DNA of 64,000 nt, taken from assembly GCA_965112735.1 (NCBI GenBank), contig OZ218958.1, positions 2,542,001-2,606,000 on the forward strand. Direction: 5' to 3'. Position numbers and translations under genes: made by a program. Under the pieces are notes generated by a model, which saw nothing but the letters and a program-made list of their open reading frames with translations, did not search any database and had not been told where the DNA came from. Within the stretch, counting starts at the first letter, position 1. Each line of letters begins with the position of its first letter. Positions 9,797 through 63,859 of this stretch are shown one piece after another. The stretch comes from Phaeosaccion multiseriatum (taxonomy: Eukaryota > Protista > Ochrophyta, other classes).

Positions 9797-19433
<9,637 letters not shown>

Positions 19434-19553: not shown

Positions 19554-22500
19554 ATGCAAAGGACCTTCAGCACTGAGGTAAAGCTCCCTTCCCCCCCTTG
19601 TCCCACACCCGCACAACGCACTCACTCGCTCTGTCTACACATGTCCCCCTCCTACTTTCGCGCTGTTACTTTGCTTCTTGTGGCAGGCCACCCTTCTGCG
19701 GGAAGCTATCATTAGTGGCCAGAGCGTCAAAAAGGTGGCGGCGGCGGTGAGAGCCCTCGTCGCTAAGAACGGAGGGAGGAAGGCATGCTTGGACGAGCCC
19801 TTCGATGAGAGCGGATGGTTTGCCCTGACCAAAGCTATAAATGAAGGCAGGGGTGACATCATGGCTCTTCTGCTGCAAGAGGGGGCGTCGCCGAATGCTG
19901 TAAATCGTGTGCTCGGGGGGACTGTGTTAATGTTCGCATGTACTGTAAAGGATGCTGCTGCTGTTGTACCACGGCTTCTCTCTGCTGGTGCGGACGTCAA
20001 TGCAGTAGCGATAGAAGGACATACGGCTCTCATGGTGGCCTCCCTGCTAGGGACCGTGGTGGTGGTGCGCAAGCTGCTCTCCGCCGGTGCCAGTGTGGAC
20101 TTGGTTGACAGTGCAGGTCGTACTGCGTTGGTCTGTTCGGCACAGGAAGGGCACCATGCAGTGGTCCAGCAGCTGCTGTCAGCCGGTGCGGAGGTCGACA
20201 AGGCAGATTCGGAAGGCTTTACGGCCTTGATATGGGCCTCTGAGAAAGGACATCATGCGGTGGTACAGCAGCTGCTGTCGGCAGGTGCAGAGGTGGACTG
20301 GGCAACGATACAGTGGCGTACATCCCTCCATTCAGCTTCATTTGCAGGACATGAAAGAGTGGTCCAGCAGCTGCTGTCAGCCGGCGCGGAGGTCGACAAG
20401 GCAGATTCGGAAGGCTTTACGGCCTTGGTATTGGCCTCTCAGGAAGGATATCATGCGGTGGTACAGCAGCTGCTATCGGCAGGTGCAGAGGTGGATTGGG
20501 CAACGACAGAGGGGCGTACATCCCTCTATCAAGCCTCATTTGAAGGACATGAAAGAGTGGTCCAGCAGCTGCTGTCAGTCGGTGCGGAGGTCGACAAGGC
20601 AGATTCGGAAGGCTTTACGGCCTTGGTATTGGCCTCTCAGGAAGGACATCATGCGGTGGTACAGCAGCTGCTATCGGCAGGTGCAGAGGTGGACTGGGCA
20701 ACGATACAGGGGCGTACATCCCTCCATTCAGCTTCATTTGCAGGACATGAAAGAGTGGTCCAGCAGCTGCTGTCAGTCGGTGCGGAGGTCGACAAGGCAG
20801 ATTCGGAAGGCTTTACGGCCTTGGTATTGGCCTCTCAGGAAGGACATCATGCGGTGGTACAGCAGCTGCTATCGGCAGGTGCAGAGGTGGACTGGGCAAC
20901 GATAAAGGGGCGTACATCCCTCTATCAAGCCTCATTTGCAGGACATGAAAGAGTGGTCCAGCAGCTGCTGTCAGTCGGTGCGGAGGTCGACAAGGCAGAT
21001 TCGGAAGGCTTTACGGCCTTGATCGCAGCCTCACTTGAAGGACATGAAAGAGTGGTCCAGCATCTGCTGTCAGCCGGCGCGGAGGTCGACAAGGCAGATT
21101 CGGAAGGCTTTACGGCCTTGATCGCAGCCTCTCAGAAAGGACATCATGCGGTGGTACAGCAGCTGCTATCGGCAGGTGCGGAGGTGGACCGGCCAACGAT
21201 AAAGGGGCGTACATCCCTCTATCAAGCCTCACGTGAAGGACATGAAAGAGTGGTCCAGCAGCTGCTGTCAGTCGGGGCGAAGGTCGACAAGGCAGATTCG
21301 GAAGGCTTTACGGCCTTGATCGCAGCCTCACTTGAAGGACATGAAAGAGTGGTCCAGCATCTGCTGTCAGCTGGCGCAGAGGTCGACCAGGCAGATTTGG
21401 AAGGCTATACGGCCTTGGTACTGGCCTCTGAGGAAGGACATCATGCGGTGGTACAGCAGCTGCTATCGGCAGGTGTAGTGGTGGACCGGGCAACGATAGA
21501 CGGTCGTTCATCCCTCCATGCAGCCTCATTTGAAGGACATGAAAGAGTGGTCCAGCAGCTGCTGTCAGCCGGCGCGGAGGTCGATATGACAGATTTCGGA
21601 GGCATTCCGCCCTTATTCATGGCCTCTCAGGAAGGACATGTTGCGGTGGTGGAGCAGCTGCTGTCAGCCGGCGCGGAGGTCGATATGACAGATTCCCAAG
21701 GTGTTACACCCTTGTTAATGGCCTCCCAACAAGGACAACTTGCGGTGGTGCGGCAGCTGCTGTCGGCCGGCGCTGATCCCAACCACTTGGATGACAGAGA
21801 TGGTCGCACCGCCCTGTACGTGGGCGCAAGAATGGGTCACCACAGGGTCACGCAGCTGCTCCTCACCTCCGGGGCAGATGCGAATTTGGGAGGCTCGAAC
21901 GGATGGTTTGCCCTCTATGCTGCAAGCGAACATGGACATGGCCTTGTGGTGGATCAGCTCATCGCAGCCGGCGCGGAACTCGAAAGCCGTAAAGGTGTGC
22001 ACGGGAGAAGTGCGTTGATGATGGCATCGAGGGAAGGGCACAGAAGCATTGTGCGGAAGCTGCTCAGGGCTGGGGCAGAGGTGAACGCGATGAGTGGCGA
22101 CGGTTATGGAGCGATACACTTGGCATCTCAGTTTGGCCATGCTCGCGTCGTGGAGGAGCTCATCTCAGCAGGTGCTGACGTGGAGGTGGTGAATGCTGAC
22201 GGGCACACAGCTTTGTTGCTGGCTGCTGATAGTATAGAGGGTCATGAGGCAGTGATCCGTGTTCTCCTGTCTGCGGGGGCTGATCCTGACCATGAGGGCA
22301 CTATCAACGCTGGAACGCCCTTGTTTTGTGCAGCACGGCAGGGCCACAGCGGGGCGGCGCTGGAGCTTCTCTCAGGAGGGGCATCACTGGCAAAGGCTCT
22401 GACAACAGCACAAGAGCATCGCGATGAAGCATCTGTTGAATTCCTCCTGGCCGCGGACAGACATCTCTTTGCGTCACAAAGCGCGTTGGACCTGATGCGG

Positions 22501-22599
22501 GGCACTGACCGTCTGTTCGGCAAGGAAGGGAGGCTGAAGGTGTATCAGAGAGAGGTTAGCCCAGAGGTGCTGCAGGAGGTGGCGGAGGAGATGGCATGA
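19554..22599 (+). CDS. Tandem ankyrin-repeat protein, paralogue 1 (14 highly conserved 33-aa units plus divergent caps)
   Basis: Exon 1 19554-19577 encodes MQRTFSTE. Intron 19578-19686 is GT..AG. Exon 2 is in frame with ORF 19678..22599. The 99-bp units span 20194-21579. Confidence 0.92.
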
Positions 22600-23485
22600 T
22601 GAAAGGGGCGTCTCTGGCCTGCGGTGGGAAGGACGACGGGTGTTGCCCTAAGGGTGAGGACGAAAAGGAAAGGGCTCTTGTCATGAGAATTGTGTGAGTT
22701 TCAGTGAGAGGGCGTTGAGGGAGAGGGCGTGCCCATGCGGAATGGGGCATCAGCGTGAGGGGGCAGTGGGGTAGGCAGGAGGATCAAGGGTAGAGCAACT
22801 CCCCCCTCCCCCTCAGGGTGTCGAAAAAGGAGGTTTAGTGGTGTAAGTGGCGGCGTGACCTTGCTTTTCCATGAGCATTAATGAAAGTGTTACACACGTG
22901 GAGGCGAAGGAGAGACCCCTTCCCCCCTTTGTTCTGTGGTTCCGTTGCTTGTGACCCCCCTCCAAGGCATGCCATGCTGGCCCCCTGGGTGCTGCCCAAA
23001 ACGCCCCGCATGAACAAAGTTGGGGCTACCGTAGGCAGGGGAGAAGAGGAGGAAGATTTCCACGGTGCGTCCAAGAAGGTAGAGACGGAAGGCAACAGAT
23101 GCCCCTCTCCTCTGTTTCCCCACGTCGCGATTAAAATGAATCGGACCTCGGTCCAGGGCTCACTCCACGCCCCTCCCTGCAGTGAAGCTGATGTGAGGGC
23201 GTGCGTCAAGGAGGAAGGGGTGCAGGGCGAGGGACTCACGCCACAGGCGGGAGGCGAGAGGGTCGTCCAGAAATTGGTCGTGGAGTTGTTCCAGGTTCCC
23301 ATTGACATATTTCCCTCCTCCTATCCCACTATTTGATCTCGATCCCAGTCGTCTTTTCCCTCTCCCGCCTCATTACTTTTCCCTCTCCCGCCTCCATCCC
23401 CTCCACTATACTGCGCCTGTCAGACAGCTGTCTGTGCTGCTGCTCTTATCGCGCCTCTCTCTTTCTGCTTTGCTCAGCCGGTAGC

Positions 23486-25934
23486 ATGCAAAGGACCTTC
23501 AGCACTGAGGTAAAGCTCCCTTCCCCCCCTTGTCCCTCACCAGAACGACGCACTCACTCGCTCTGTCTACACATGTCCCCCTCCTACTTTCGCGCTGCTA
23601 CTTTGCTCCTTGTGGCAGGCCACCCTTCTGCGGGAAGCTATCATTAGCGGCCAGAGCGTCAAAAAGGTGGCGGCGGCGGTGAGAGCCCTCGTCGCTAAGA
23701 ACGGAGGGAGGAAGGCATGCTTGGACGAGCCCTTCGATGAGAGCGGATGGTTTGCCCTGACCAAAGCTATAAATGAAGGCAGGGGTGACATCATGGCTCT
23801 TCTGCTGCAAGAGGGGGCGTCGCCGAATGCTGTAAATCGTGTGCTCGGGGGGACTGTGTTAATGTTCGCATGTACTGTAAAGGATGCTGCTGCTGTTGTA
23901 CCACGGCTTCTCTCTGCTGGTGCGGACGTCAATGCAGTAGCGATAGAAGGACATACGGCTCTCATGGTGGCCTCCCTGCTAGGGACCGTGGTGGTGGTGC
24001 GCAAGCTGCTCTCCGCCGGTGCCAGTGTGGACTTGGTTGACAGTGCAGGTCGTACTGCGTTGGTCTGTTCGGCACAGGAAGGGCACCATGCAGTGGTCCA
24101 GCAGCTGCTGTCAGCCGGTGCGGAGGTCGACAAGGCAGATTCGGAAGGCTTTACGGCCTTGATATGGGCCTCTGAGAAAGGACATCATGCGGTGGTACAG
24201 CAGCTGCTGTCGGCAGGTGCAGAGGTGGACTGGGCAACGATACAGTGGCGTACATCCCTCCATTCAGCTTCATTTGCAGGACATGAAAGAGTGGTCCAGC
24301 AGCTTCTGTCAGCCGGCGCGGAGGTCGACAAGGCAGATTCGGAGGGCTTTACGGCCTTGATCGCAGCCTCTGAGAAAGGACATCATGCGGTGGTACAGCA
24401 GCTGCTATCGGCAGGTGCAGAGGTGGACTGGGCAACGACAGAGGGGCGTACATCCCTCTATCAAGCCTCATTTGCAGGACATGAAAGAGTGGTCCAGCAG
24501 CTGCTGTCAGCCGGTGCGGAGGTCGACAAGGCAGATTCGGAAGGTTTTACGGCCTTGGTATTGGCCTCTCAGGAAGGACATCATGCGGTGGTACAGCAGC
24601 TGCTATCGGCAGGTGCAGAGGTGGACTGGGCAACGACAGAGGGGCGTACATCCCTCTATCAAGCCTCATTTGAAGGACATGAAAGAGTGGTCCAGCAGCT
24701 GCTGTCAGTCGGTGCGGAGGTCGACAAGGCAGATTCGGAAGGCTTTACGGCCTTGGTATTGGCCTCTCAGGAAGGACATCATGCGGTGGTACAGCAGCTG
24801 CTATCGGCAGGTGCAGAGGTGGACTGGGCAACGACAAACGGGAGTACATCCCTCCATTTCGCCTCATTTGCAGGACATGAAAGAGTGGTCCAGCAGCTGC
24901 TGTCAGCCGGCGCGGAGGTCGACAAGGCAGATGCAGTACGCTTTACGGCCTTGATCGCAGCCTCTGAGAAAGGACATCATGCGGTGGTACAGCAGCTGCT
25001 ATCGGCAGGTGCAGAGGTGGACTGGGCAACGATACAGGGGCGTACATCCCTCTATCAACCCTCATTTGAAGGACATGAAAGAGTGGTCCAGCAGCTGCTG
25101 TCAGCCGGTGCGGAGGTCGACAAGGCAGATTCGGAAGGCTCTACGGCCTTGATCGCAGCCTCTGAGAAAGGACATCTTGCGGTGGTACGGCATCTGCTGT
25201 CGGCCGGCGCTGATCCCAACCACTTGGATGACAGAGATGGTCGCACCGCCCTGTACATGGCCGCACAAAACGGTCACCACAGGGTCACGCAGCTGCTCCT
25301 CACCTCCGGCGCGGAACTCGAAAGCCGTAATGGTGTGCACGGGATAAGTGCGTTGATGGGAGCGTCGATGGAAGGGCACAGAAGCATTGTGCGGAAGCTG
25401 CTCAGGGCTGGTGCAGAGGTGAATGCGATGAGCGGCGATGGGGTTGGAGCGATACACTTGGCAGCTGCAAGGGGCCATGCTCGTATCGTGGAGGAGCTCA
25501 TCTCAGCAGGTGCTGACGTGGAGGTGGTGAATGCTAATGGGCGCACAGCTTTGTTGCTGGTTGCTGTTAAAGAGGGTCATGGGGCAGTGATCCGTGTGCT
25601 CCTGTCTGCGGGGGCTGATCCTGACCATGAGGGCACTATCAACGCTGGAACGCCCTTGTTTTGTGCAGCACAGCAGGGCCACAGCGGGGCGGCGCTGGAG
25701 CTTCTCTCAGGAGGGGCCTCACTGGCAAAGGCTCTGACAACAGCACAAGAGCATCGCGATGAAGCATCTGTTGAATTCCTCCTGGCCGCGGACAGACATC
25801 TCTTTGCGTCACAAAGCGCGTTGGACCTGATGCGGGGCACTGACCGTCTGTTCGGCAAGGAAGGGAGGCTGAAGGTGTCTCAGAGAGAGGTTAGCCCTGA
25901 GGTGCTGCAGGAGGTGGCGGAGGAGATGGCATGA
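23486..25934 (+). CDS. Tandem ankyrin-repeat protein, paralogue 2 (11 conserved units)
   Basis: Same two-exon structure as paralogue 1. ORF 23610..25934. Units span 24126-25214. Confidence 0.92.
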
Positions 25935-26819
25935 TGAAAGGGGCGTCTCTGACCTGCGGTGGGAAGGACGACGGGTGTTGCCCTAAGGGTGAGGACGAAA
26001 AGGAAAGGGCTCTTGTCATGAGAATTGTGTGAGTTTCAGTGAGAGGGCGTTGAGGGAGAGGGCGTGCCCATGCGGAATGGGGCATCAGCGTGAGGGGGCA
26101 GTGGGGTAGGGAAGAGGATCAAGGGGAGAGCAACTCCCCCCTCCCCCTCAGGGTGTCGAAAAAGGAGGTTTCGTGGTGGAAGTGGCGGCGTGACCTTGCT
26201 TTTCCATGAGCACCAATGAAAGAGTTACACACGTGGAGGCGAAGGAGAGACCTTTCCCCCCTTTGTTCTGTGGTTCCGTTGCTTGTGACCCCCCTCCAAG
26301 GCATGCCATGCTGGCCCCCTGGGTGCTGCCCAAAACGCCCCGCATGAACAAAGTTGGGGCTACCGTAGGCAGGGGAGAAGAGGAGGAAGATTTCCACGGT
26401 GCGTCCAAGAAGGTAGAGACGGAAGGCAACAGATGCCCCTCTCCTCTGTTTCCCCACGTCGCGATTAAAATGAATCGGACCTCGGTCCAGGGCTCACTCC
26501 ACGCCCCTCCCTGCAGTGAAGCTGATGTGAGGGCGTGCGTCAAGGAGGAAGGGGTGCAGGGCGAGGGACTCACGCCACAGGCGAGAGGCGAGAGGGTCGT
26601 CCAGAAATTGGTCGTGGAGTTGTTCCAGGTTCCCATTGACATATTTCCCTCCTCCTCCACCATTTGATGATCGCAGTTTTGCCAGTTTTTCGTCATTTCA
26701 GTCTTTTCCCTCTCCCTCCTCCAGCCCCTCCACTATACTGCGCCAGTCAGACAGTTCACAGCTATCTGTGTCGCTGCTCTTACCGCGCCTCTCTCTTTCT
26801 GCTTTGCTCAGCCGGTACC

Positions 26820-29800
26820 ATGCAAAGGACCTTCAGCACTGAGGTAAAGCTCCCTTCCCCCCCTTGTCCCTCACCAGAACGACGCACTCACTCGCTCTGT
26901 CTATACATGTCCCCCTCCTACTTTCCCGCTGTTACTTTTCCCCTTGTGGCAGGCCACCCTTCTGCGGGAAGCCATCATAAGTGGCCAGAGCGTCAAAAAG
27001 GTGAAAGCGGCGGTGAGAGCCCTCGTCGCTAAGAACGGAGGGAGGATGGCATGCTTGGACGAGCCCTTCGATGAGGGCGGATGTTTTGCCCTGACCGAAG
27101 CTATAAATCAAGGCAGGGGTGACATCATGGCTCTTCTGCTGCAAGAGGGGGCGTCGCCGAATGCTGTAAATCGTGTGGTCGGGTTGACTGTGTTGATGTT
27201 CGCATGTAGTGTAAAGGATGCTGCTGCTGTTGTACCACGGCTTCTCTCTGCTGGTGTGGACGCCAATGCAGTAGCGACAGACGGACGTACGGCTCTCATG
27301 GTGGCCTCCCTGGAAGGGACCGTGGTGGTGGTGCACAAGCTGCTCTCCGCCGGTGCCAGTGTGGACTTGGTTGACAGTGCAGGTCGTACTGCGTTGGTCC
27401 TTTCGGCACAGGAAGGGCACCATGCAGTGGTCCAGCAGCTGCTGTCAGCCGGCGCGGAGGTCGACAAGGCAGATTCGGAGGGCTTTACGGCCTTGATCGC
27501 AGCCTCCCAGAAAGGATATCATGCGGTGGTACAGCAGCTGCTATCGGCAGGTGCAGAGGTGGACTGGGCAACGACACTGGGGCGTACATCCCTCCATTTC
27601 GCCTCACATGAAGGACATGAAAGAGTGGTCCAGCAGCTGCTGTCAGCCGGCGCGGAGGTCGACAAGGCAGATGCGGGACGCTTCACGGCCTTCATCGCAG
27701 CCTCTGAGAAAGGACATCATGCGGTGGTACAGCAGCTGCTATCGGCAGGTGCGTGCGTGCGTGCAGAGGTGGACTGTGCAGCGATAAAGGGGCGTACATC
27801 CCTCTTAACAGCCTCACAATATGGACATGAAAGAGTGGTCAAGCAGCTGCTATCAGCCGGTGCGGAGGTCGACAAGGCAGATTCGAGAGGCTTTACGGCC
27901 TTGGCATTGGCCTCTCAGAAAGGACATCATGCGGTGGTACAGCAGCTGCTATCGGCAGGTGCAGAGGTGGACTGGGCAACGACAGAGGGGCGTACATCCC
28001 TCTTTACAGCCTCATTTGCAGGACATGAAAGAGTGGTCCAGCAGCTGCTGTCAGCCGGTGCGGAGGTCGACAAGGTAAATTCGAAAGGCTTTACGGCCTT
28101 GGTATTGGCCTCTCAGGAAGGACATCATGCGGTGGTACAGCAGCTGCTATCGGCAGGTGCAGAGGTGGACTGGGCAACGATACAGTGGCGTACATCCCTC
28201 CATTCAGCTTCATTTGCAGGACATGAAAGAGTGGTCCAGCAGCTTCTGTCAGCCGGCGCGGAGGTCGACAAGGCAGATTCGGAAGGCTTTACGGCCTTGG
28301 TATTGGCCTCTGCGGAAGGACATCATGCGGTGGTACAGCAGCTGCTATCGGCAGGTGCAGAGGTGGACTGGGCAACGACAAACGGGAGTACATCCCTCCA
28401 TTTCGCCTCATTTGTAGGACATGAAAGAGTGGTCCAGCAGCTGCTGTCAGCCGGCGCGGAGGTCGACAAGGCAGATGCAGTACGCTTTATGGCCTTGATC
28501 GCAGCCTCTGAGAAAGGACATCATGCGGTGGTACAGCAGCTTCTATCGGCAGGTGCAGAGGTGGATTGGGCAACGACAGAGGGGCGTACATCCCTCTTAA
28601 CAGCCTCACTTGCAGGACATGAAAGAGTGGTCCAGCAGCTGCTGTCAGCCGGTGCGGAGGTCGACAAGGCAGATTCGAGAGGCTTTACGGCCTTGGTATT
28701 GGCCTCTGAGAAGGGACATCATGCGGTGGTACAGCAGCTGCTATCGGCAGGTGCAGAGGTGGACTGTGCAGCGATAAAGGGGCGTACATCCCTCCATTTC
28801 GCCTCACTTGCAGGACATGAAAGAGTGGTCCAGCAGCTGCTGTCAGCCGGTGCGGAGGTCGACAAGGCAGATGCGGAGGGCTATACGGCCTTGATCGCAG
28901 CCTCTGAGAAAGGACATCTTGCGGTGGTACAGCAGCTGCTATCGGCAGGTGCAGAGGTGGACTGGGCAACGACAGAGGGGCGTACATCCCTCTTTACAGC
29001 CTCACTTGCAGGACATGAAAGAGTGGTCCAGCAGCTGCTGTCAGCCGGTGCGGAGGTCGACAAGGCAGATTCGAAAGGCTCTACGGCCTTGATCGCAGCC
29101 TCTGAGAAAGGACATCTTGCGGTGGTACGGCATCTGCTATCGGCCGGCGCTGATCCCAACCATGACAGAAGTACAAGTCTTGCCCTCTATGGTGCAAGCC
29201 AAAATGGGCATGGCCTTGTGGTGGATCAGCTCATCGCAGCCGGCGCGGAACTCGAAAGCCGTAGTGGTGTGCTCGGGAGAAGTGCGTTGATGGGAGCGTC
29301 TATGGCAGGGCACAGAAGTATTGTGCGGAAGCTGCTCAGGGCTGGTGCAGAGGTGAATGCGATGAGTGGCGGCGGTTATGGAGCGATACACTTGGCATCT
29401 CAGGAAGGCCATGCTCGTGTCGTGGAGGAGCTCATCTCAGCAGGTGCTGACGTGGAGGTAGTGAATGCTGATAGGGGCACAGCTTTGCAGCTGGCTGCTG
29501 ATAGTATAGAGGGTCATGAGGCAGTGATCCGTGTGCTCCTGTCTGCGGGGGCTGATCCTGACCATGAGGGCACTATCAACGCTGGAACGCCCTTGTTTTG
29601 TGCAGCACGGCAGGGCCACAGCGGGGCGGCGCTGGAGCTTCTCTCAGGAGGGGCCTCACTGGCAAAGGCTCTGACAACAGCACAAGAGCATCGCAATGAA
29701 GCATCTGTTGAATTCCTCCTGGCCGCGGACAGACATCTCTTTGCGTCACAAAGCGCGTTGGACCTGATGCGGGGCACTGACCGTCTGTTCGGCAAGGAAG

Positions 29801-29871
29801 GGAGGCTGAAGGTGTCTCAGAGAGAGGTTAGCCCAGAGGTGCTGCAGGAGGTAGCGGAGGAGGTGGCATGA
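26820..29871 (+). CDS. Tandem ankyrin-repeat protein, paralogue 3 (17 conserved units)
   Basis: Same two-exon structure. ORF 26944..29871. Units span 27460-29154 and include a 12-bp insertion. Confidence 0.92.
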
Positions 29872-44264: not shown

Positions 44265-50624
<6,360 letters not shown>

Positions 50625-50862
50625 AGTGAAGAGAAGTTTGCTCCCTCCTGTGCTTCTCTCTTTCTTTCTCTCTCTCTTTTTTCAAGGTATAAGTGTGCCT
50701 TGTTTGGTCTAAGCTTTTACTCATTCACTGGAGCCTTAAGTGCATTTACAACTAAAAGTAACTACCTTCGCCTTGATTGCACCCCGGGTTGGGGTGTGTA
50801 ACGGCTAATACGGCTGCGACACAAGAGCAAGTGCGATCGTAGAGCGATCATCCTCCTTCTCC

Positions 50863-57782
<6,920 letters not shown>

Positions 57783-58572
57783 GGCTGATCACCACAAGAG
57801 CCGCCCCAGCCTACGGGAACCGGTCTTTCTCCCTTCCTAATCTCTTTGGAGGAAAAGGTTATCTCTCTTGATCCTCTTTGGTGGGAAGTTGTTCAGCTCA
57901 TTGTACGTAACCTTTACGTAAGGATGGAATCTAACTCCCCGACTCTCTCGGGACTCTCGGCTGTCGGGTGCATTCATTACAACGGCTGTGTGTGTGTGTG
58001 TGCGTGCGCGGGCGCGTGAATAAGTCCTAATCCGGACAGTTCTGGTCTGTGACTGCCGCTCTAGGCCGTGTGGCCTTCGCTCGGACCATGGGACACCTCA
58101 TTACCTTATCAAGAGGGGCCTCGACTCCTCCCCTCACTCCCCTTTCCCGCATATTATCTTTTGTATCTCATTACGTAATGACTAAGGTATATCTCATTAC
58201 AACCATTGATTGATTGATCCACTGATCAGTGCACATTGCAGTGGGCACGCAGTCTCGCCCCGGCGCGCTGCTGTGTGCTGTGCCTCACTCCTCACTCCTC
58301 ACCTCCTCGCCTCTTTGCCGACAGTCTCCATGCTGTTGCCTCTTGTTGCTCCCACTACTACTACGAGCGCTACTACTTCTCCTACTTCACTCACTCGCTC
58401 GCTCTATCCCTCCCTCTCACTCCCTTTCCCTCTCCCTCCCCCTGTCCTTCCTTCTCCCCCTCCCACCCTCCTTCCTTCTCCCCCTCCCTCCCTCACTCCC
58501 ATCCCTCTACACTACTACTGCCGCTGCCTCTCCCGCCACCCTCTGCTCCAGCTCCGGCTTGCGAAGAGCCTG

Positions 58573-58679
58573 TTACTGCTGCTGCTGCCCAAATGGCTGA
58601 TGCTGCTGCTGCTGCTGCTGATGCCCGTATGTCTGCTGCTCATGAGGTTGCTGGTGTTGCTGCTGTAGCAGCTGCTGCA

Positions 58680-58725
<46 letters not shown>

Positions 58726-59198
58726 GTGGTACTGCTGTTGCTGGTACAACTGCAGCTGCGGCGGCGGCGGCGGCGGCGGCGGCGCCCTGTGGAAGCGCGG
58801 CTGGTGCTGCACGATGGCGTCCTCCGGCATAAGCGGAATTAGCTCCTCGGGGATGAGGCCGCTCAGCTCTGAGAGGAGGAGGACCGACACGGCAGGCATG
58901 GAAGGAGGGGGGGGAGGCAGAGAGACTTTAGACTTTATATTCGTATACAAACATGGGCTTGCCACCCCTCACTGCACACACAACAGCCGTTTCCAACTAG
59001 CCTGGTGTGCAGAACACTAGGGACAACAACCACATGTCCGCTTTTCATTCTTCACTTTCCCCTCTCTCCGCCCCCCTCCCCCTCACTCCCTCTTCCCCTC
59101 TCCCCCCCCCTCCCCCGCCCGTCCGCCCCTCCGTCTCGCCCCCTCTCCCTCCCTCTCTCCCTCCCTCCCTCTCTCCCTCTCTCCCTCTCTCTCTCTCC

Positions 59199-59248
<50 letters not shown>

Positions 59249-60579
59249 GCACCTTCCCGCTCAAAGCCCGCCATGCCAAGCTGCTTGAGAAGCTCGTCGC
59301 TGTGGCTCATCTTGAAGGAGTCACTGAAGGAAAGGCGGCACTCCTGCCCCCCTCCCGTCACCTCACAGTGGACGGAGGTGTCCGGCGAAGTCGCCAGCGT
59401 CATGAAGGGTAAGGCCAGGCTTGCCTCCTTTAGGCCCGCCTTGTTGAGACCGTAGTTGTGTAGGTTGCGCTTGGCAAGCTTGCGGCATGCTGCGAACTTG
59501 GTCAGGAGGTGCCCCACTTGCTCCTGCTTGGCTGCCACCGCGTTGAGCTGAAGTGCAGAGGAAGACAGCAGCAGCATTGGTTAGTTGGTTGGTTGGTTGG
59601 TTGGTTGGTTGGTTGGTTGGCATAGCAGACATGCGAAAGTTATTGACTAAACCCATTCACTCAGCCACTAACCCCCCTCACCTTTGCCCTCTTCCTCCTG
59701 AGCTCGTTCTTGGGGTCGTCCAGCCTGGCCCCCGTGGGCAGCCCCTTCCAATAGATCTCCTTCTTCTCCTTGCAGATAATGTCCAGAGCCATGAGCACAT
59801 TAAGGGCGTCATACACCCTCCTTCTGATGTTTTTCTCATCGAAGGCTCCCTTGGTGCCAGGCTTGCCGCCCACCCCGAGGGATGACTTGCCCTTCTTACC
59901 CTCCTTCTTGCCGCCGTTAGCCTTGCTGACCTGCTGCTGCTGTGGTTGTAGTGGAGCCACCGCCCCCTGCGGCTGCTCCTGGGGCTGCATTATCGTCACC
60001 TCCCCCTGTTGTTGTTGTTGTTGGTGGTGCTGCATCATCAACTGCTGCTGCGCCTGCTGCTCCTGCTGCTGAATCACCAACTGCTGCTGCTGTATCGCCA
60101 ACTGCTGCGCCTGTATCTGCTGCTTCGACAGGACCAGCGGCACCGACCTTGCCGCCTCCTCCGCCGCCTCGTCAAGAAACTCCTTGACTAGCTCGTCCGC
60201 CACTTCGTTGTACGTGGTCACCTTCTTCTCCTGCACCTTACACGACACCTTGAGGCTGAAGTGACGCAGACCCTTGCTGGTGCGGGCCGCCGGTGCATCT
60301 GCCCCTCCTTTGCCCTTCTTGGCGGGGGGTCGGGGTGGGGAGGGGGCTACGGGCACGAGTTGGGGTGGCAGGGGCAGTGCCGGCGCACCTGCATACACAC
60401 TCTGTGGTTGTTGCTGTTGGTGCTGCTGTTGTTGTGGTGGTGGTTGTGGTTGCAGTTGTTGTGGTTGTTGTTGGTGTGGTTGTTGTGGTTGTTGTGGTTG
60501 TTGTGGGTGCTGCTGTTGCTGCTGCTGCTGTTGTGGGTGCTGTTGTTGTTGCTGTTGTTGCTGTTGTTGTTGCTGTTGA

Positions 60580-60651
<72 letters not shown>

Positions 60652-60717
60652 GGTTGTTGTTGTTGCTGTTGCTGCTGAAGTAGTTGTTGCTGCTGCTGAA
60701 GTAGTTGCAGCTGTTGC

Positions 60718-60760
<43 letters not shown>

Positions 60761-60762
60761 GC

Positions 60763-60802
<40 letters not shown>

Positions 60803-61508
60803 CTCGTTGCAGTTGTTCTCGCTGCTGCTTCGCCTCCTGCTGCTTCGCCTCCTGCTGCTTAGCCTCCTGCTGCTGCTGCTGCACGGCTGCCGCCAACTTG
60901 CCCAGCCCTCCTTCGTCTTCTTCCTTCACCGCCCTCTCGGGCGGAGCCAGGGTTGTTGACTTTGCACTCCCATCCGACAAACCTGCACCGCCCTTGGCAG
61001 CAGTAGGTGCGGTGATCTCCGCGTCCGCTTCCCGGATGGCAACCTTAAGCCGTATCATCCCTTCTCCCATGTTCTCCCCTGGTTGGAGGTTCAGCCCCCA
61101 CACGGGACTAGGGGGAGGCGGGAGGGCAACGGGCTCACCCACCAACGGAGGAGCCACCACCACCCCGCGCTGCCCCCCCTGCCACTCCTCGCCACAGAGC
61201 TCCTCAATCACGGAGACGGACCTTCGGGCGCTGCCATACGAGCCCAAATGTCCCACGGAGGAGCCGTTTGTTGTTGGGCCAACTACTGCTGCTGCTGCTG
61301 CGGCCGGTGGCGCGGGTCCGTGTTGGGGGCCGGGCAACGTGGACACCAGCCCAATCTCCTCGGCCATTTGCTGGAGGCCGGCCGCGTGCAACAAGCTCAG
61401 CCAGTTGTCCTGCACAGGGGGGAGCTTGGAGTCCACTTCGTCCTCGCGCTGCCGCTTGCGCTGCTGCTGTGCGGTCCATTCTGCCGTGGGCCTACCTATT
61501 AAATTCAT
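58573..61508 (-). CDS. DP: DP transcription factor (E2F dimerisation partner); about 3 exons, polyQ-rich
   Basis: [28 protein letters not shown] and [33 protein letters not shown]. The DP C-terminal exon reads [19 protein letters not shown]...[14 protein letters not shown]. Confidence 0.93.
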
Positions 61509-62169
61509 TCCCGCCGATCCCTTTCAGTCCCCCTCTTTCGTTGACGACAGACTGCTCCTGCTCCTGCCCTGTTGCGCTTGCTGTCGCCGCTCCGTCAACC
61601 TCCACTGTGCCTCTCTCTTCCTCCACCCCCCCCCCCTCCCCTCCGAGCCCCTTCTCCTCTCTCTCTCTCTCTCTCGCTCGTTTTTTGTCACGGCTTCCAC
61701 CCTCCCTCTTTTGTATGTAGGGCAGCGGACCCGCAAGGCTGCAAAGGGCGTGAACCCACAACTGAGACTCAAAGTAGTACACCAGGCGTGGGGGCTCTAG
61801 GGGCGTGGTGCTCGCTACGCGTTTTCCCCCCAACTCCCTCCTTCCCGCGAAGTATGCGAGCGGCTGTATCCACGGGATATGTTTCGCGGAGGCCCACGCC
61901 TATGCAAGATTTGGTTCCACCTCCCCACGGTGTGGTGGTTGAGGATTATAACGATTTGATATTCAGAGTCGTCTCTAGCTTGTAGCAGCGATACCATAGG
62001 CAGAAGAACAGCGTCGTTTCCGCCAGCGAGTCGACGGTGCGTGCGCGGCGCCCGTCTTGAAGGCGCTTCGAGAAACCGTTTGGACGGGGAAGGAATCGAT
62101 CTTTCTTGAAATCGGACGTCTCTGCCGCTGCTCACGGCCACAGAACAAAGCAAGGGGGAAGGAGAGAGC

Positions 62170-63859
62170 ATGTCTTCTCGCAGGGCAAAGGACTTTAAGA
62201 AGGGCGTTGATGGGGATGACTCCCGCCGGCGCCGGGGCGAGAAGGGCGTGCAGGTGCGGAAGCAGAAGAGAGAAGAAGGCTTGGCCAAGAAGCGACACAT
62301 CACCATGACGGGAGAGGGGAGCCCAGTCCCGCTTGGATCGGCGGGCATGAACAACTCAGTAGGGGCCATTGCACTAGGAGGAGGGGAGGTAGGAGGCGCG
62401 GGAGTAGTAGATGCGGGTAAGAAGGCACCGGCCTTCACCATCACCGACATTCCGATGCTCGCGACGGGCATCCTGACCTCGACCGACCCGGAGGAGCAGC
62501 TTCGCTGTACGCGGGGCATCCGCAAGCTCCTCTCCATCGAGGGGAACCCCCCCGTGCAGCAGGTGCTCGACGCCCACATCCTCCCCTCCCTCGTGGCCTT
62601 CCTGAGCCGCAGCGACCAGAACGACCTACAGTTTGAAGCTGCCTGGGCCCTTACCAACATTGCGTCCACGGACATGACTCGAGTGGTTGTGCAGGCCGGG
62701 GCCGTGCCTCTCCTAAGCGAGCTGCTCGGCAACCAAAGCGCCGACCTCCGGGAGCAGTGCGCCTGGTGCCTGGGGAACATTGCCGGCGATTGCGCGGAGC
62801 TCCGTGACCTTGTGCTGTCCACAAACGCCATGCAGGGCCTTTTGGCCAACGTCGCTCAGCCGGCCAACCTCACCCTCCTCCGGAACTGCGTGTGGGCTCT
62901 CAGCAACTTCTGCAGAGGCAAGCCGCAGCCAGACATTGAGCTCATGAAGCCCGTGCTGCCCGCGTTGGTGCACTTGCTGAGCTCGGAGGACCTGGAGGTA
63001 CTTACAGATGCCGGGTGGGCACTCTCCTACCTCTCTGACGGAGACAACGACAGAATCCAGGTGGGTAGGTTGCTGGGGAAGTACATTCCGGTGCCTGGCG
63101 CGGTTGTATGTGTTTTAGTCCCCTGCTCTGCTCCCTGCTCTGCGTACACACACACACACACGCGCGCGCGCGCGTTGGATTGGGCTAGCTGTGGAAGAGT
63201 AGCAAGAGTGACGGGGCGGCTTGACTTGCTCCTCTTGACTTTTCTTTGGAGTAGTCCATATTCCTTATTTTCTGCGTTTCCCGTTTCCCTCGACGCCCAA
63301 TCGCAGGACAATGTGCCTAGTGCCCCCCCCCCCCCTCCTCCACTCACACCCCTCCTTACTCCGTAAAATTATAGAATTAGAGAAGGGCTGCTGCCTTGGT
63401 ACGCATTTTTGTTCGGTTTCCAGCTTTTCCACCCTTCTTTCTCACCCGCTCTTTCCACTCTTTCCACCCACCCACAAACACAACCCCCACCCCCTACCCT
63501 TCCTCCCCACCCCTCCCTCTGCCCTTTCTATTGTCCAATCGATGAAGGTGGTGGTGGATCACAACCTCTGCCCATCCCTCGCCAAAATGCTTGCCCACGA
63601 GACGAGCAGCGTGGTCACTCCGGCCCTCCGTACCCTCGGCAACATTGTCACAGGAGACGACGACCAGACGCAGGCCGTCGTCTCGTCAGGAGTGCTCACC
63701 ACCTTGGCTAAGCTCTTGCAGCATAACAAAACCTCCATCCGCAAGGAGACGTGCTGGATGCTGTCCAACATCGCGGCGGGCTCCTCTGCGCAGATCTCGG
63801 AGATGGTCCAAGTGCCGTACATTCTCGAGGGGGTAGTGGCGCAGCTCTCGTGCAGGTGC

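Follow-up and report, generated by a model that had tools for sequence, protein, structure and literature searches.

Three tandem ankyrin-repeat genes of Phaeosaccion multiseriatum carry near-identical repeats that differ mainly at predicted binding-groove residues

The window analysed here is a stretch of 64,000 nt of contig OZ218958.1 of Phaeosaccion multiseriatum, and all coordinates are relative to its first letter. It contains three head-to-tail genes on the forward strand (g1, g2 and g3, hereafter the trio) that encode long ankyrin-repeat proteins. Their central repeats are near-identical, and the differences between them are concentrated at six codons per repeat that in a structural model line the ankyrin groove. 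Variation among near-identical repeats within each gene is the feature that is particular to this locus. We consider it probable that the trio forms a family with a variable ankyrin groove, in which concerted evolution and selection for groove diversity together maintain a recognition repertoire.

Near-Identical Ankyrin Units and Their Exchange Between Genes

The trio corresponds to open reading frames (ORFs) at 19678-22599, 23610-25934 and 26944-29871, which are intact over 2.3-2.9 kb, and all repeats of each gene lie inside one uninterrupted exon. The core arrays hold 42 units of exactly 99 bp, 14 in g1, 11 in g2 and 17 in g3. Of two types, 23 units are of type A (consensus VDKAD..G.TAL..AS..GHHAVVQQLLSAGAE) and 19 of type B (consensus VDWAT..GRTSL..AS..GHERVVQQLLSAGAE). 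Tandem Repeats Finder detected periods of 99 and 198, and also of 297 in g1, and a 42-nt core of the scaffold occurs 18 times at up to 2 mismatches where 0 occurrences are expected. The ORFs and the rows of 33 residues bear out the initial annotation, made from the sequence alone, on the number and length of the units; every di-residue variant that it listed is present, as are the differences between cap repeats of the paralogues (QF/AR/QE and RE/ME/MA).

Other parts of that description hold with qualification. Types A and B alternate as described in g2 and g3, but in g1 the order is broken by two hybrid units (A'), which have the 5' half of type A and the 3' half of type B. A 297-bp block (A'-A-B) is present twice in g1 (20986-21579), each time headed by A'. 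The two hybrids differ from each other by 2 silent bases only, and the A and B units of the two blocks differ at many hypervariable codons. The hybrids point to unequal crossovers in which A and B units recombined, with the 297-bp block duplicated afterwards in g1. Strict alternation in g3 is accompanied by an in-frame insertion of 12 nt, (GTGC)x3, which adds four residues to an inter-unit loop. The scaffold, described as almost invariant, is near-identical among units but not strictly invariant, with a third-position diversity of 0.04-0.06 when hybrid and terminal units are excluded.

Units of the same type have a mean identity of 82% in protein and 89-90% in DNA, whereas A and B units are only 61% identical. 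Homogenisation therefore acts on AB pairs of 198 bp. AB dimers are 84% identical in protein and 91% in DNA, and the scaffold alone is 91-93% identical. At the DNA level 20 of the 23 A units are distinct, as are 18 of the 19 B units. Several units recur between genes: unit 2 of g2 equals unit 8 of g3, units 3-5 of g1 match units 5-7 of g2 and units 7-9 of g2 match units 9-11 of g3, all of these matches being out of register. Adjacent hypervariable codons occur in all four combinations (E-K, Q-E, Q-K and E-E), which implies recurrent change or very short exchange tracts. Sharing of units out of register, together with the hybrids, indicates concerted evolution plus selection for diversity, and such a combined process acting on the binding groove is well supported.

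Position of the Variable Residues on the Predicted Ankyrin Fold

Six codons per unit (6, 7, 13, 14, 17 and 18) carry 63% of the amino-acid entropy in type A and 67% in type B. The same six are the most variable in both types, despite the different codons that A and B have there. An even spread of substitutions over scaffold and surface, the pattern that the initial annotation regarded as contradicting its proposal, was not seen. Alignment to a designed ankyrin repeat protein (DARPin) gives the register D1 S2 E3 G4 F5 T6 A7 L8 I9 W10 A11 S12 E13 K14 G15 H16, in which the six codons correspond to ankyrin positions 2, 3, 9, 10, 13 and 14.

An AlphaFold2 model of g2, built on an alignment of 36 sequences, had a mean predicted local distance difference test (pLDDT) score of 88, with about 98 in the repeats and 42-64 in the tail. 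A model from the single sequence was unusable (pLDDT 48.6). Helix 1 occupies residues 11-18 of each unit in the AlphaFold2 model. Positions 2 and 3 are thus predicted to lie in the loop preceding helix 1, and positions 9, 10, 13 and 14, being i, i+1, i+4 and i+5, to form one stripe on the inner helix. This placing, based on the secondary structure of the model, helix periodicity and the DARPin register, agrees with the surface positions named in the initial annotation. The best structural match found by Foldseek was the 24-repeat solenoid of ankyrin-B (AnkB; 4rlv), with a template modelling (TM) score of 0.66, in which a peptide lies along the groove; further matches were ankyrin-1, the NOMPC spring and a DARPin. 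Inner helices and finger loops form the binding face of ankyrin proteins. The same location is stated for the ankyrin arrays of fungi (PMC4986451). The model therefore gives good support for placing the variable sites in the groove by which ankyrins are known to bind.

Diversity at the Six Codons Compared With Neutral Expectation

For the tests of diversity and of minor codon states the two hybrid and two terminal units were excluded. Diversity at codon positions 1 and 2 of the six codons was 0.344 in A and 0.417 in B, compared with 0.038 and 0.064 at third positions of the scaffold, so that replacement diversity at these codons is 6-9 times silent scaffold diversity. Among minor codon states the ratio of nonsynonymous to synonymous states was 35:3 at the six codons and 23:13 in the scaffold (Fisher p=0.004). 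Nei-Gojobori estimates, which use all 42 units including hybrids and terminal units, gave a dN at hypervariable codons of 0.37 (A) and 0.55 (B), and a scaffold dS of 0.12 (A) and 0.07 (B). A Goldman-Yang codon model was fitted to each partition on a fixed tree. For the hypervariable partition of B, omega reached its upper bound of 50 with a tree 8 times longer than that of the scaffold (scaffold omega 0.70), and for that of A the tree was 6 times longer than that of the scaffold.

The pattern is also present outside the homogenised arrays. In the flanking, non-homogenised N- and C-terminal repeats the paralogues differ at 19 of 41 sites at the six positions and at 27 of 185 sites at other positions (odds ratio 5.05, p=2.4e-5). 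These results require selection for difference, since relaxed constraint cannot lift replacement diversity above silent diversity and homogenisation acts on contiguous tracts. In diversity, codon-model and flanking-repeat tests alike, variation is thus concentrated on the ankyrin binding surface and lies far above neutral, as had been claimed.

Domain Content and the Constant C-Terminal End

The three gene models match only ankyrin families in Pfam (Ank, PF00023, E=1.8e-157 over 20 stretches; Ank_2, PF12796, E=9.3e-152). The ankyrin assignment is confirmed by these repeats together with the stacked solenoid fold of the model. No NTPase, NACHT, NB-ARC or ROC-COR domain was found in the gene models by Pfam, nor an NTPase in the spacers and neighbouring ORFs; ORFs of the spacers had no significant Pfam family, with one match at 0.012 below the curated cut-off. 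The description of the system as NTPase-free is therefore upheld for the gene models and the 1-kb spacers. Its description as stand-alone holds for the domain content, but a nearly invariant C-terminal end could couple the proteins to other factors.

Five or six diverged repeats lie 3' of the arrays, with a tail after them. The 115 codons of the constant end, which comprise the last ankyrin repeat, a degenerate cap and the tail, differ by 5-6 nt between paralogues, whereas the preceding 91 codons differ by 25-31 nt. The 84-residue tail had no Pfam family at E<=10, including BTB, SOCS-box and F-box, and no relative among 1.84 billion representative proteins. Searches with the C-terminal 212 residues gave generic ankyrin matches of 28-50% identity, and among those examined none matched the tail past its ankyrin-like part. 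No signal peptide or membrane segment was seen by eye.

Two further ideas were considered and not retained. According to the first, a double TGA truncates what would otherwise be three ANK-BTB genes. The frame after the stop codon is full of stops, and the tail and the two longest spacer ORFs match no domain, BTB included, the remaining downstream frames being unscanned. Furthermore, ORF 75-2066 (663 aa), in which ankyrin repeats are followed by a long non-ankyrin C-terminal part, has only generic ankyrin likeness (about 30%) to the trio and a dissimilar tail, and loss of a BTB domain by the trio is therefore unsupported. The second was targeted mutation, by a diversity-generating retroelement or a process like repeat-induced point mutation. 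It was set aside since the substitutions include every type of base change as well as multi-nucleotide changes; there was no reverse transcriptase among the Pfam hits of the scanned ORFs, and no search aimed at one was made.

Relatives and Similar Arrays in Environmental Contigs

All matches from protein searches were generic ankyrin proteins with 28-50% identity, and those from the ESM Atlas were generic ankyrin clusters. Scans of viral and metagenome proteins gave distant ankyrin matches only, and a 39-nt piece of the scaffold was absent from metagenome contigs. Among the distant matches, several environmental contigs carry arrays that, when shifted by 99 nt, match themselves at a DNA identity of 0.82-0.91. 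Two of these (L005 and L015; identity 0.85-0.91) encode ankyrin-only genes according to Pfam, one on L005 and two in tandem on L015, where the array adjoins a fragment of RNA polymerase II Rpb1 and a WD40 gene. The most variable positions are 1, 3, 9, 10, 13, 17 and 33 on L005 and 1, 3, 5, 9, 10, 14 and 25 on L015. As in the trio, the loop and positions 9, 10 and 13/14 are variable; unlike the trio, to whose genes they are only 35-40% identical, these arrays have other repeat consensus sequences, no A/B alternation and other tails. This indicates that the same mode of evolution recurs outside this genome, and from their sequences L005 and L015 look like independent cases of it.

Comparison With Known Repeat Systems

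The closest known case is found in fungal NOD-like receptors (NLRs) with repeats of high internal conservation (HIC). Their ankyrin, TPR and WD40 arrays consist of near-identical repeats with repeat-number polymorphism, shuffling and a few positively selected positions on the concave face, and polymorphism of repeat number between strains was shown in Podospora (PMC4986451). The trio shares with them near-identical repeats of 33 residues, differences in repeat number, shuffling, and concerted evolution combined with diversifying selection. Within one HIC gene the repeats are 80-100% identical, and Dyrka et al. (PMC4986451) set the cut-off at 85% over 100 aa or more. On this scale the 82% protein identity of same-type units of the trio falls within the range of 80-100% but just under 85%, and A against B is far lower. 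The few hypervariable binding-face positions above neutral and the shuffling with concerted evolution agree with HIC genes. The resemblance to fungal NLR sensor repeats, which had been proposed, thus holds. Unlike fungal NLRs, the trio lacks an N-terminal effector domain and the NACHT or NB-ARC domain that defines NOD-like receptors and STAND proteins (signal transduction ATPases with numerous domains), and its host is not a fungus. It also homogenises a two-repeat AB pair and has a constant tail without relatives.

In a 2026 survey (PMC13449251), 22% of the repeat proteins that possess an ATPase domain showed internal conservation of this kind, compared with 5.6% of the repeat proteins lacking one. 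The latter figure means that ankyrin-only cases exist in databases. We know of no study of such database cases as variable binders.

Brown-algal genes for leucine-rich repeat (LRR)-ROCO and NB-ARC-TPR proteins likewise have variable repeats that are shuffled among paralogues (Zambounis et al., 2012; PMC11378527). They possess a GTPase or NB-ARC domain and one repeat per exon, the exons being shuffled or alternatively spliced, whereas the repeats of the trio lie in one exon and ROC-COR and NB-ARC are absent. The locus therefore operates in the manner of the fungal sensor domains, yet it belongs to neither the NLR nor the brown-algal families. Nor does it belong to the ANK-BTB, ANK-SOCS or ANK-F-box genes, as none of these domains was found in the tail at E<=10.

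DARPins (6mol, 1svx) have an invariant, consensus-like framework as in the trio, and the PDB entry closest to it in sequence is also a DARPin. The parallel with DARPin libraries drawn in the initial annotation stands for positions 2, 3, 13 and 14, which are variable in both. It fails elsewhere: positions 9 and 10 belong to the fixed framework of DARPins but are hypervariable here, positions 5 and 33 are randomised in DARPins but only mildly variable here, and DARPins have 2-3 internal repeats. As DARPins are man-made, the likeness is an analogy and not a family relation. The membrane-binding domains of AnkB and ankyrin-R (4rlv, 5y4d, 7tw3) are, like the trio, solenoids of more than 20 repeats, and in 4rlv an extended peptide runs along the inner groove of inner helices and finger loops, where the residues that are variable in the trio lie. 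Animal ankyrins differ in having old, diverged repeats (about 30% identity to the trio) without homogenisation, a conserved groove, and spectrin-binding and death domains after the repeats.

Evidence From Public Sequencing Runs

Five public runs of one organism carry the stretch, all as contigs, those listed being of 100-300 bp. Contigs at 99% identity or more come from four runs along the stretch. Half of the short contigs also fit a second place in it. In the summed contig depth of these four runs the N-terminal repeats are tens of times above the spacer level, with a peak around the stop codon. Depth at 22300-22700, and at the equivalent places of g2 and g3, is tens of times the spacer level in all four runs, and several contigs diverge right after the stop codon. 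Summed contig depth is no copy number, but this suggests that the constant ends are common to many further paralogues.

A form shorter by 198 nt (two units), with TGGG between the joined points, occurs in runs X1, X3 and X5 at 23975-24178 and in run X2 at 20043-20246. It is an allele or a paralogue with a shorter N-terminal part, the two being indistinguishable in these contigs. In run X5, which comprises 34 million letters and whose type was guessed as 'DNA?', one contig joins 19577 to 19687 in agreement with the gene model, skipping 109 nt (GT..AG, cut +2), and its loose end CCACCCTTCTGCGGG matches the beginning of exon 2. There is therefore a spliced copy, either derived from mRNA or in the form of a processed paralogue.

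Proposed Mechanism and Alternative Explanations

The trio is best explained as three tandem paralogues of a lineage-specific, ankyrin-only and probably cytosolic protein that folds into long solenoids of 21-27 repeats. The repeats would be kept near-identical by unequal crossing-over and gene conversion that act on AB pairs of 198 bp within and between genes, while selection would keep or create differences at six residues per repeat that line the concave groove. Each gene would then present a different long binding groove, and recombination of units would yield new combinations. By analogy with ankyrin-B and DARPins, the groove may bind proteins or extended peptides. The family may act as a repertoire for variable recognition, perhaps in conflict with viruses or parasites, and its constant part, made up of the almost unchanged N-terminal repeats and the last 115 residues, might couple binding to a downstream partner. 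A receptor or immune function of the trio is plausible, but here we purely infer.

If this explanation is correct, the device of fungal NLR sensors, recombining near-identical repeats of which a few residues are driven apart, works outside fungi without a nucleotide-binding or death-type domain. It would justify looking more widely for systems of variable recognition among protists, whose LRR and NLR immunity is poorly known, and would provide natural, well-folding ankyrin frameworks that vary at positions 9 and 10, which are fixed in DARPin libraries. The practical weight is limited for now.

Several observations weigh against a recognition repertoire under diversifying selection. Firstly, omega of the hypervariable partition of A was only 0.91, so that diversifying selection, as claimed in the initial annotation, is supported by the replacement excess and by omega in B but not by omega in A. 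The low value arises because the alternative codons in A (ATC/GTA, GCA/TTG) differ at silent sites too. A units carry cassettes, ATC GCA ... GAG AAA or GTA TTG ... CAG GAA, which would have been kept apart while the 3-12 surrounding bases were homogenised. Part of the diversity in A looks like old cassettes shielded from homogenisation rather than recent positive selection, although the omega of A is compatible both with selection maintaining old cassettes and with positive selection acting repeatedly. Secondly, recombination makes trees of the units unreliable, and the figures of the codon model are therefore only indicative. Thirdly, none of the listed run contigs spans the stretch and they are too short to span the arrays. 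Transcription is weakly indicated, by the one short X5 contig, and the absence of a signal peptide and membrane segment was, as stated, a judgement by eye.

A more specific proposal is that the trio is an NTPase-independent intracellular recognition system, in which a germline library of recombining ankyrin binders neutralises or flags viral or parasite proteins, directly or via the tail. We put this forward as a tentative idea, with a rather low probability. Algal innate immunity would then include a new architecture, and L005 and L015 would hint at its spread among marine protists.

Equally doubtful is that the proteins are variable substrate adaptors, in which the groove picks targets and the 115-residue end docks on an enzyme, for example a ubiquitin ligase as in ASB, ANK-BTB and ANK-F-box proteins. 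This is a narrower version of the variable-groove repertoire and not its opposite. The near-constancy of the last 115 codons compared with the preceding 91 agrees with a docking function, as do the high depth at the 3' end and the contigs diverging after the stop, which suggest many paralogues. Against it, the tail matched no BTB, SOCS-box or F-box at E<=10, has no relative and is modelled with low pLDDT, and the gene at 75-2066 has only generic ankyrin likeness to the trio and a tail unlike that of the trio.

It seems improbable that the trio encodes structural or scaffolding ankyrins, such as membrane-cytoskeleton adaptors or elastic elements, that expanded recently under relaxed constraint. 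Ankyrin-B, ankyrin-1 and the NOMPC spring are among the structural matches, young repeats are expected to be alike, and the scaffold omega is near 0.7-1.0. Yet the excess of replacement over silent diversity is confined to six codons, which relaxed constraint cannot achieve, and the same positions recur in A, in B and in the old flanking repeats. Arrays of 14, 11 and 17 units with shuffled cassettes are also unexpected for a scaffold of fixed length.

An assembly artefact, with collapsed, expanded or chimeric arrays whose unit number or order is unreal, is very unlikely. Arrays of 1.1-1.7 kb with dimers that are about 91% identical are hard to assemble, and the run contigs are short, half of them fitting a second place. 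Against this, the frames are intact, almost all units are distinct, contigs of at least 99% identity come from four runs, and the pattern of variable sites is independent of unit order. The least credible alternative is that the genes were endogenised from a giant virus: ankyrin-only genes are abundant in giant viruses, but the locus has the G+C content of its flanks, a spliceosomal GT-AG intron in each copy and nuclear-gene neighbours, and a scan of viral contigs gave only generic ankyrin matches (28-35% identity).

Gene Models and Genomic Neighborhood

Each gene model begins with a short exon of eight codons (Table 1), and the start at 19554 given in the initial annotation is the ATG of this exon in g1. 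The 3' boundary of the intron, 109 bases after exon 1, reads ...TTGTGGCAG, after which exon 2 continues in frame with GCC. The similarity among the three copies starts 31 bp 5' of the g1 ATG and ends about 410 bp 3' of the g3 stop. By blastn, g1 and g2 share 98.4% identity in their 5' parts and other pairs of flanks and spacers 91-94.5%, a mosaic that fits recent exchange among paralogues.

Table 1. Features of the trio, of its surroundings in the window and of two environmental contigs with similar arrays.
Feature	Coordinates	Strand	Remarks
Tandemly triplicated segment	19523-30282	+	gene + ~0.9-kb spacer, three times; blastn of flanks
g1 gene model	19554-19577 + 19687-22599	+	978 aa
g1 exon 1	19554-19577	+	MQRTFSTE; ATG start, 8 codons, then GTAAAG in all three copies
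g1 intron	19578-19686	+	109 nt, GT..AG
g1 exon 2	19687-22599	+	ORF; 970 codons + stop, ~27 repeats; only Ank families in Pfam
g1 array	20194-21579	+	14 units, ABABABAB-A'-A-B-A'-A-B; 99-bp unit rows
A' hybrid units, g1	20986-21084 and 21283-21381	+	A 5' half, B 3' half; codons 21-32 B-type
Spacer g1-g2	22600-23485	.	94.5% identical to spacer g2-g3
g2 gene model	23486-23509 + 23619-25934	+	779 aa
g2 exon 1	23486-23509	+	
g2 intron	23510-23618	+	109 nt, GT-AG
g2 exon 2	23619-25934	+	ORF; 771 codons + stop
g2 array	24126-25214	+	11 units, ABABABABABA
Spacer g2-g3	25935-26819		paralogue of spacer g1-g2
g3 gene model	26820-26843 + 26953-29871	+	980 aa
g3 exon 1	26820-26843	+	
g3 intron	26844-26952	+	109 nt, GT-AG
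g3 exon 2	26953-29871	+	ORF; 972 codons + stop
g3 array	27460-29154	+	17 units, strict AB alternation, one 12-nt insertion
(GTGC)x3 microsatellite insertion, g3	27752-27763	+	between units 3 and 4; placement within GTGC run ambiguous
Constant C-terminal 115 codons	22252-22596 (g1), 25587-25931 (g2), 29524-29868 (g3)	+	last ankyrin repeat, degenerate cap, tail
Protein kinase ORF	47752-49002		neighbour
Formin FH2 ORF	53655-55148	-	neighbour
E2F/DP ORF	59664-61508	-	neighbour
Importin-alpha ORF	62170-63363		neighbour
One ankyrin-only gene	L005:4504-7617		1037 aa; Pfam ankyrin only
Two tandem ankyrin-only genes	L015:2608-7133		652 + 775 aa; Pfam ankyrin only

The neighbouring ORFs at 47752-63363 carry ordinary nuclear-gene domains. 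Just 5' of the locus, at 18384-18608, lies an (AG)n microsatellite with some 115 copies that gives rise to long artefactual ORFs on both strands.

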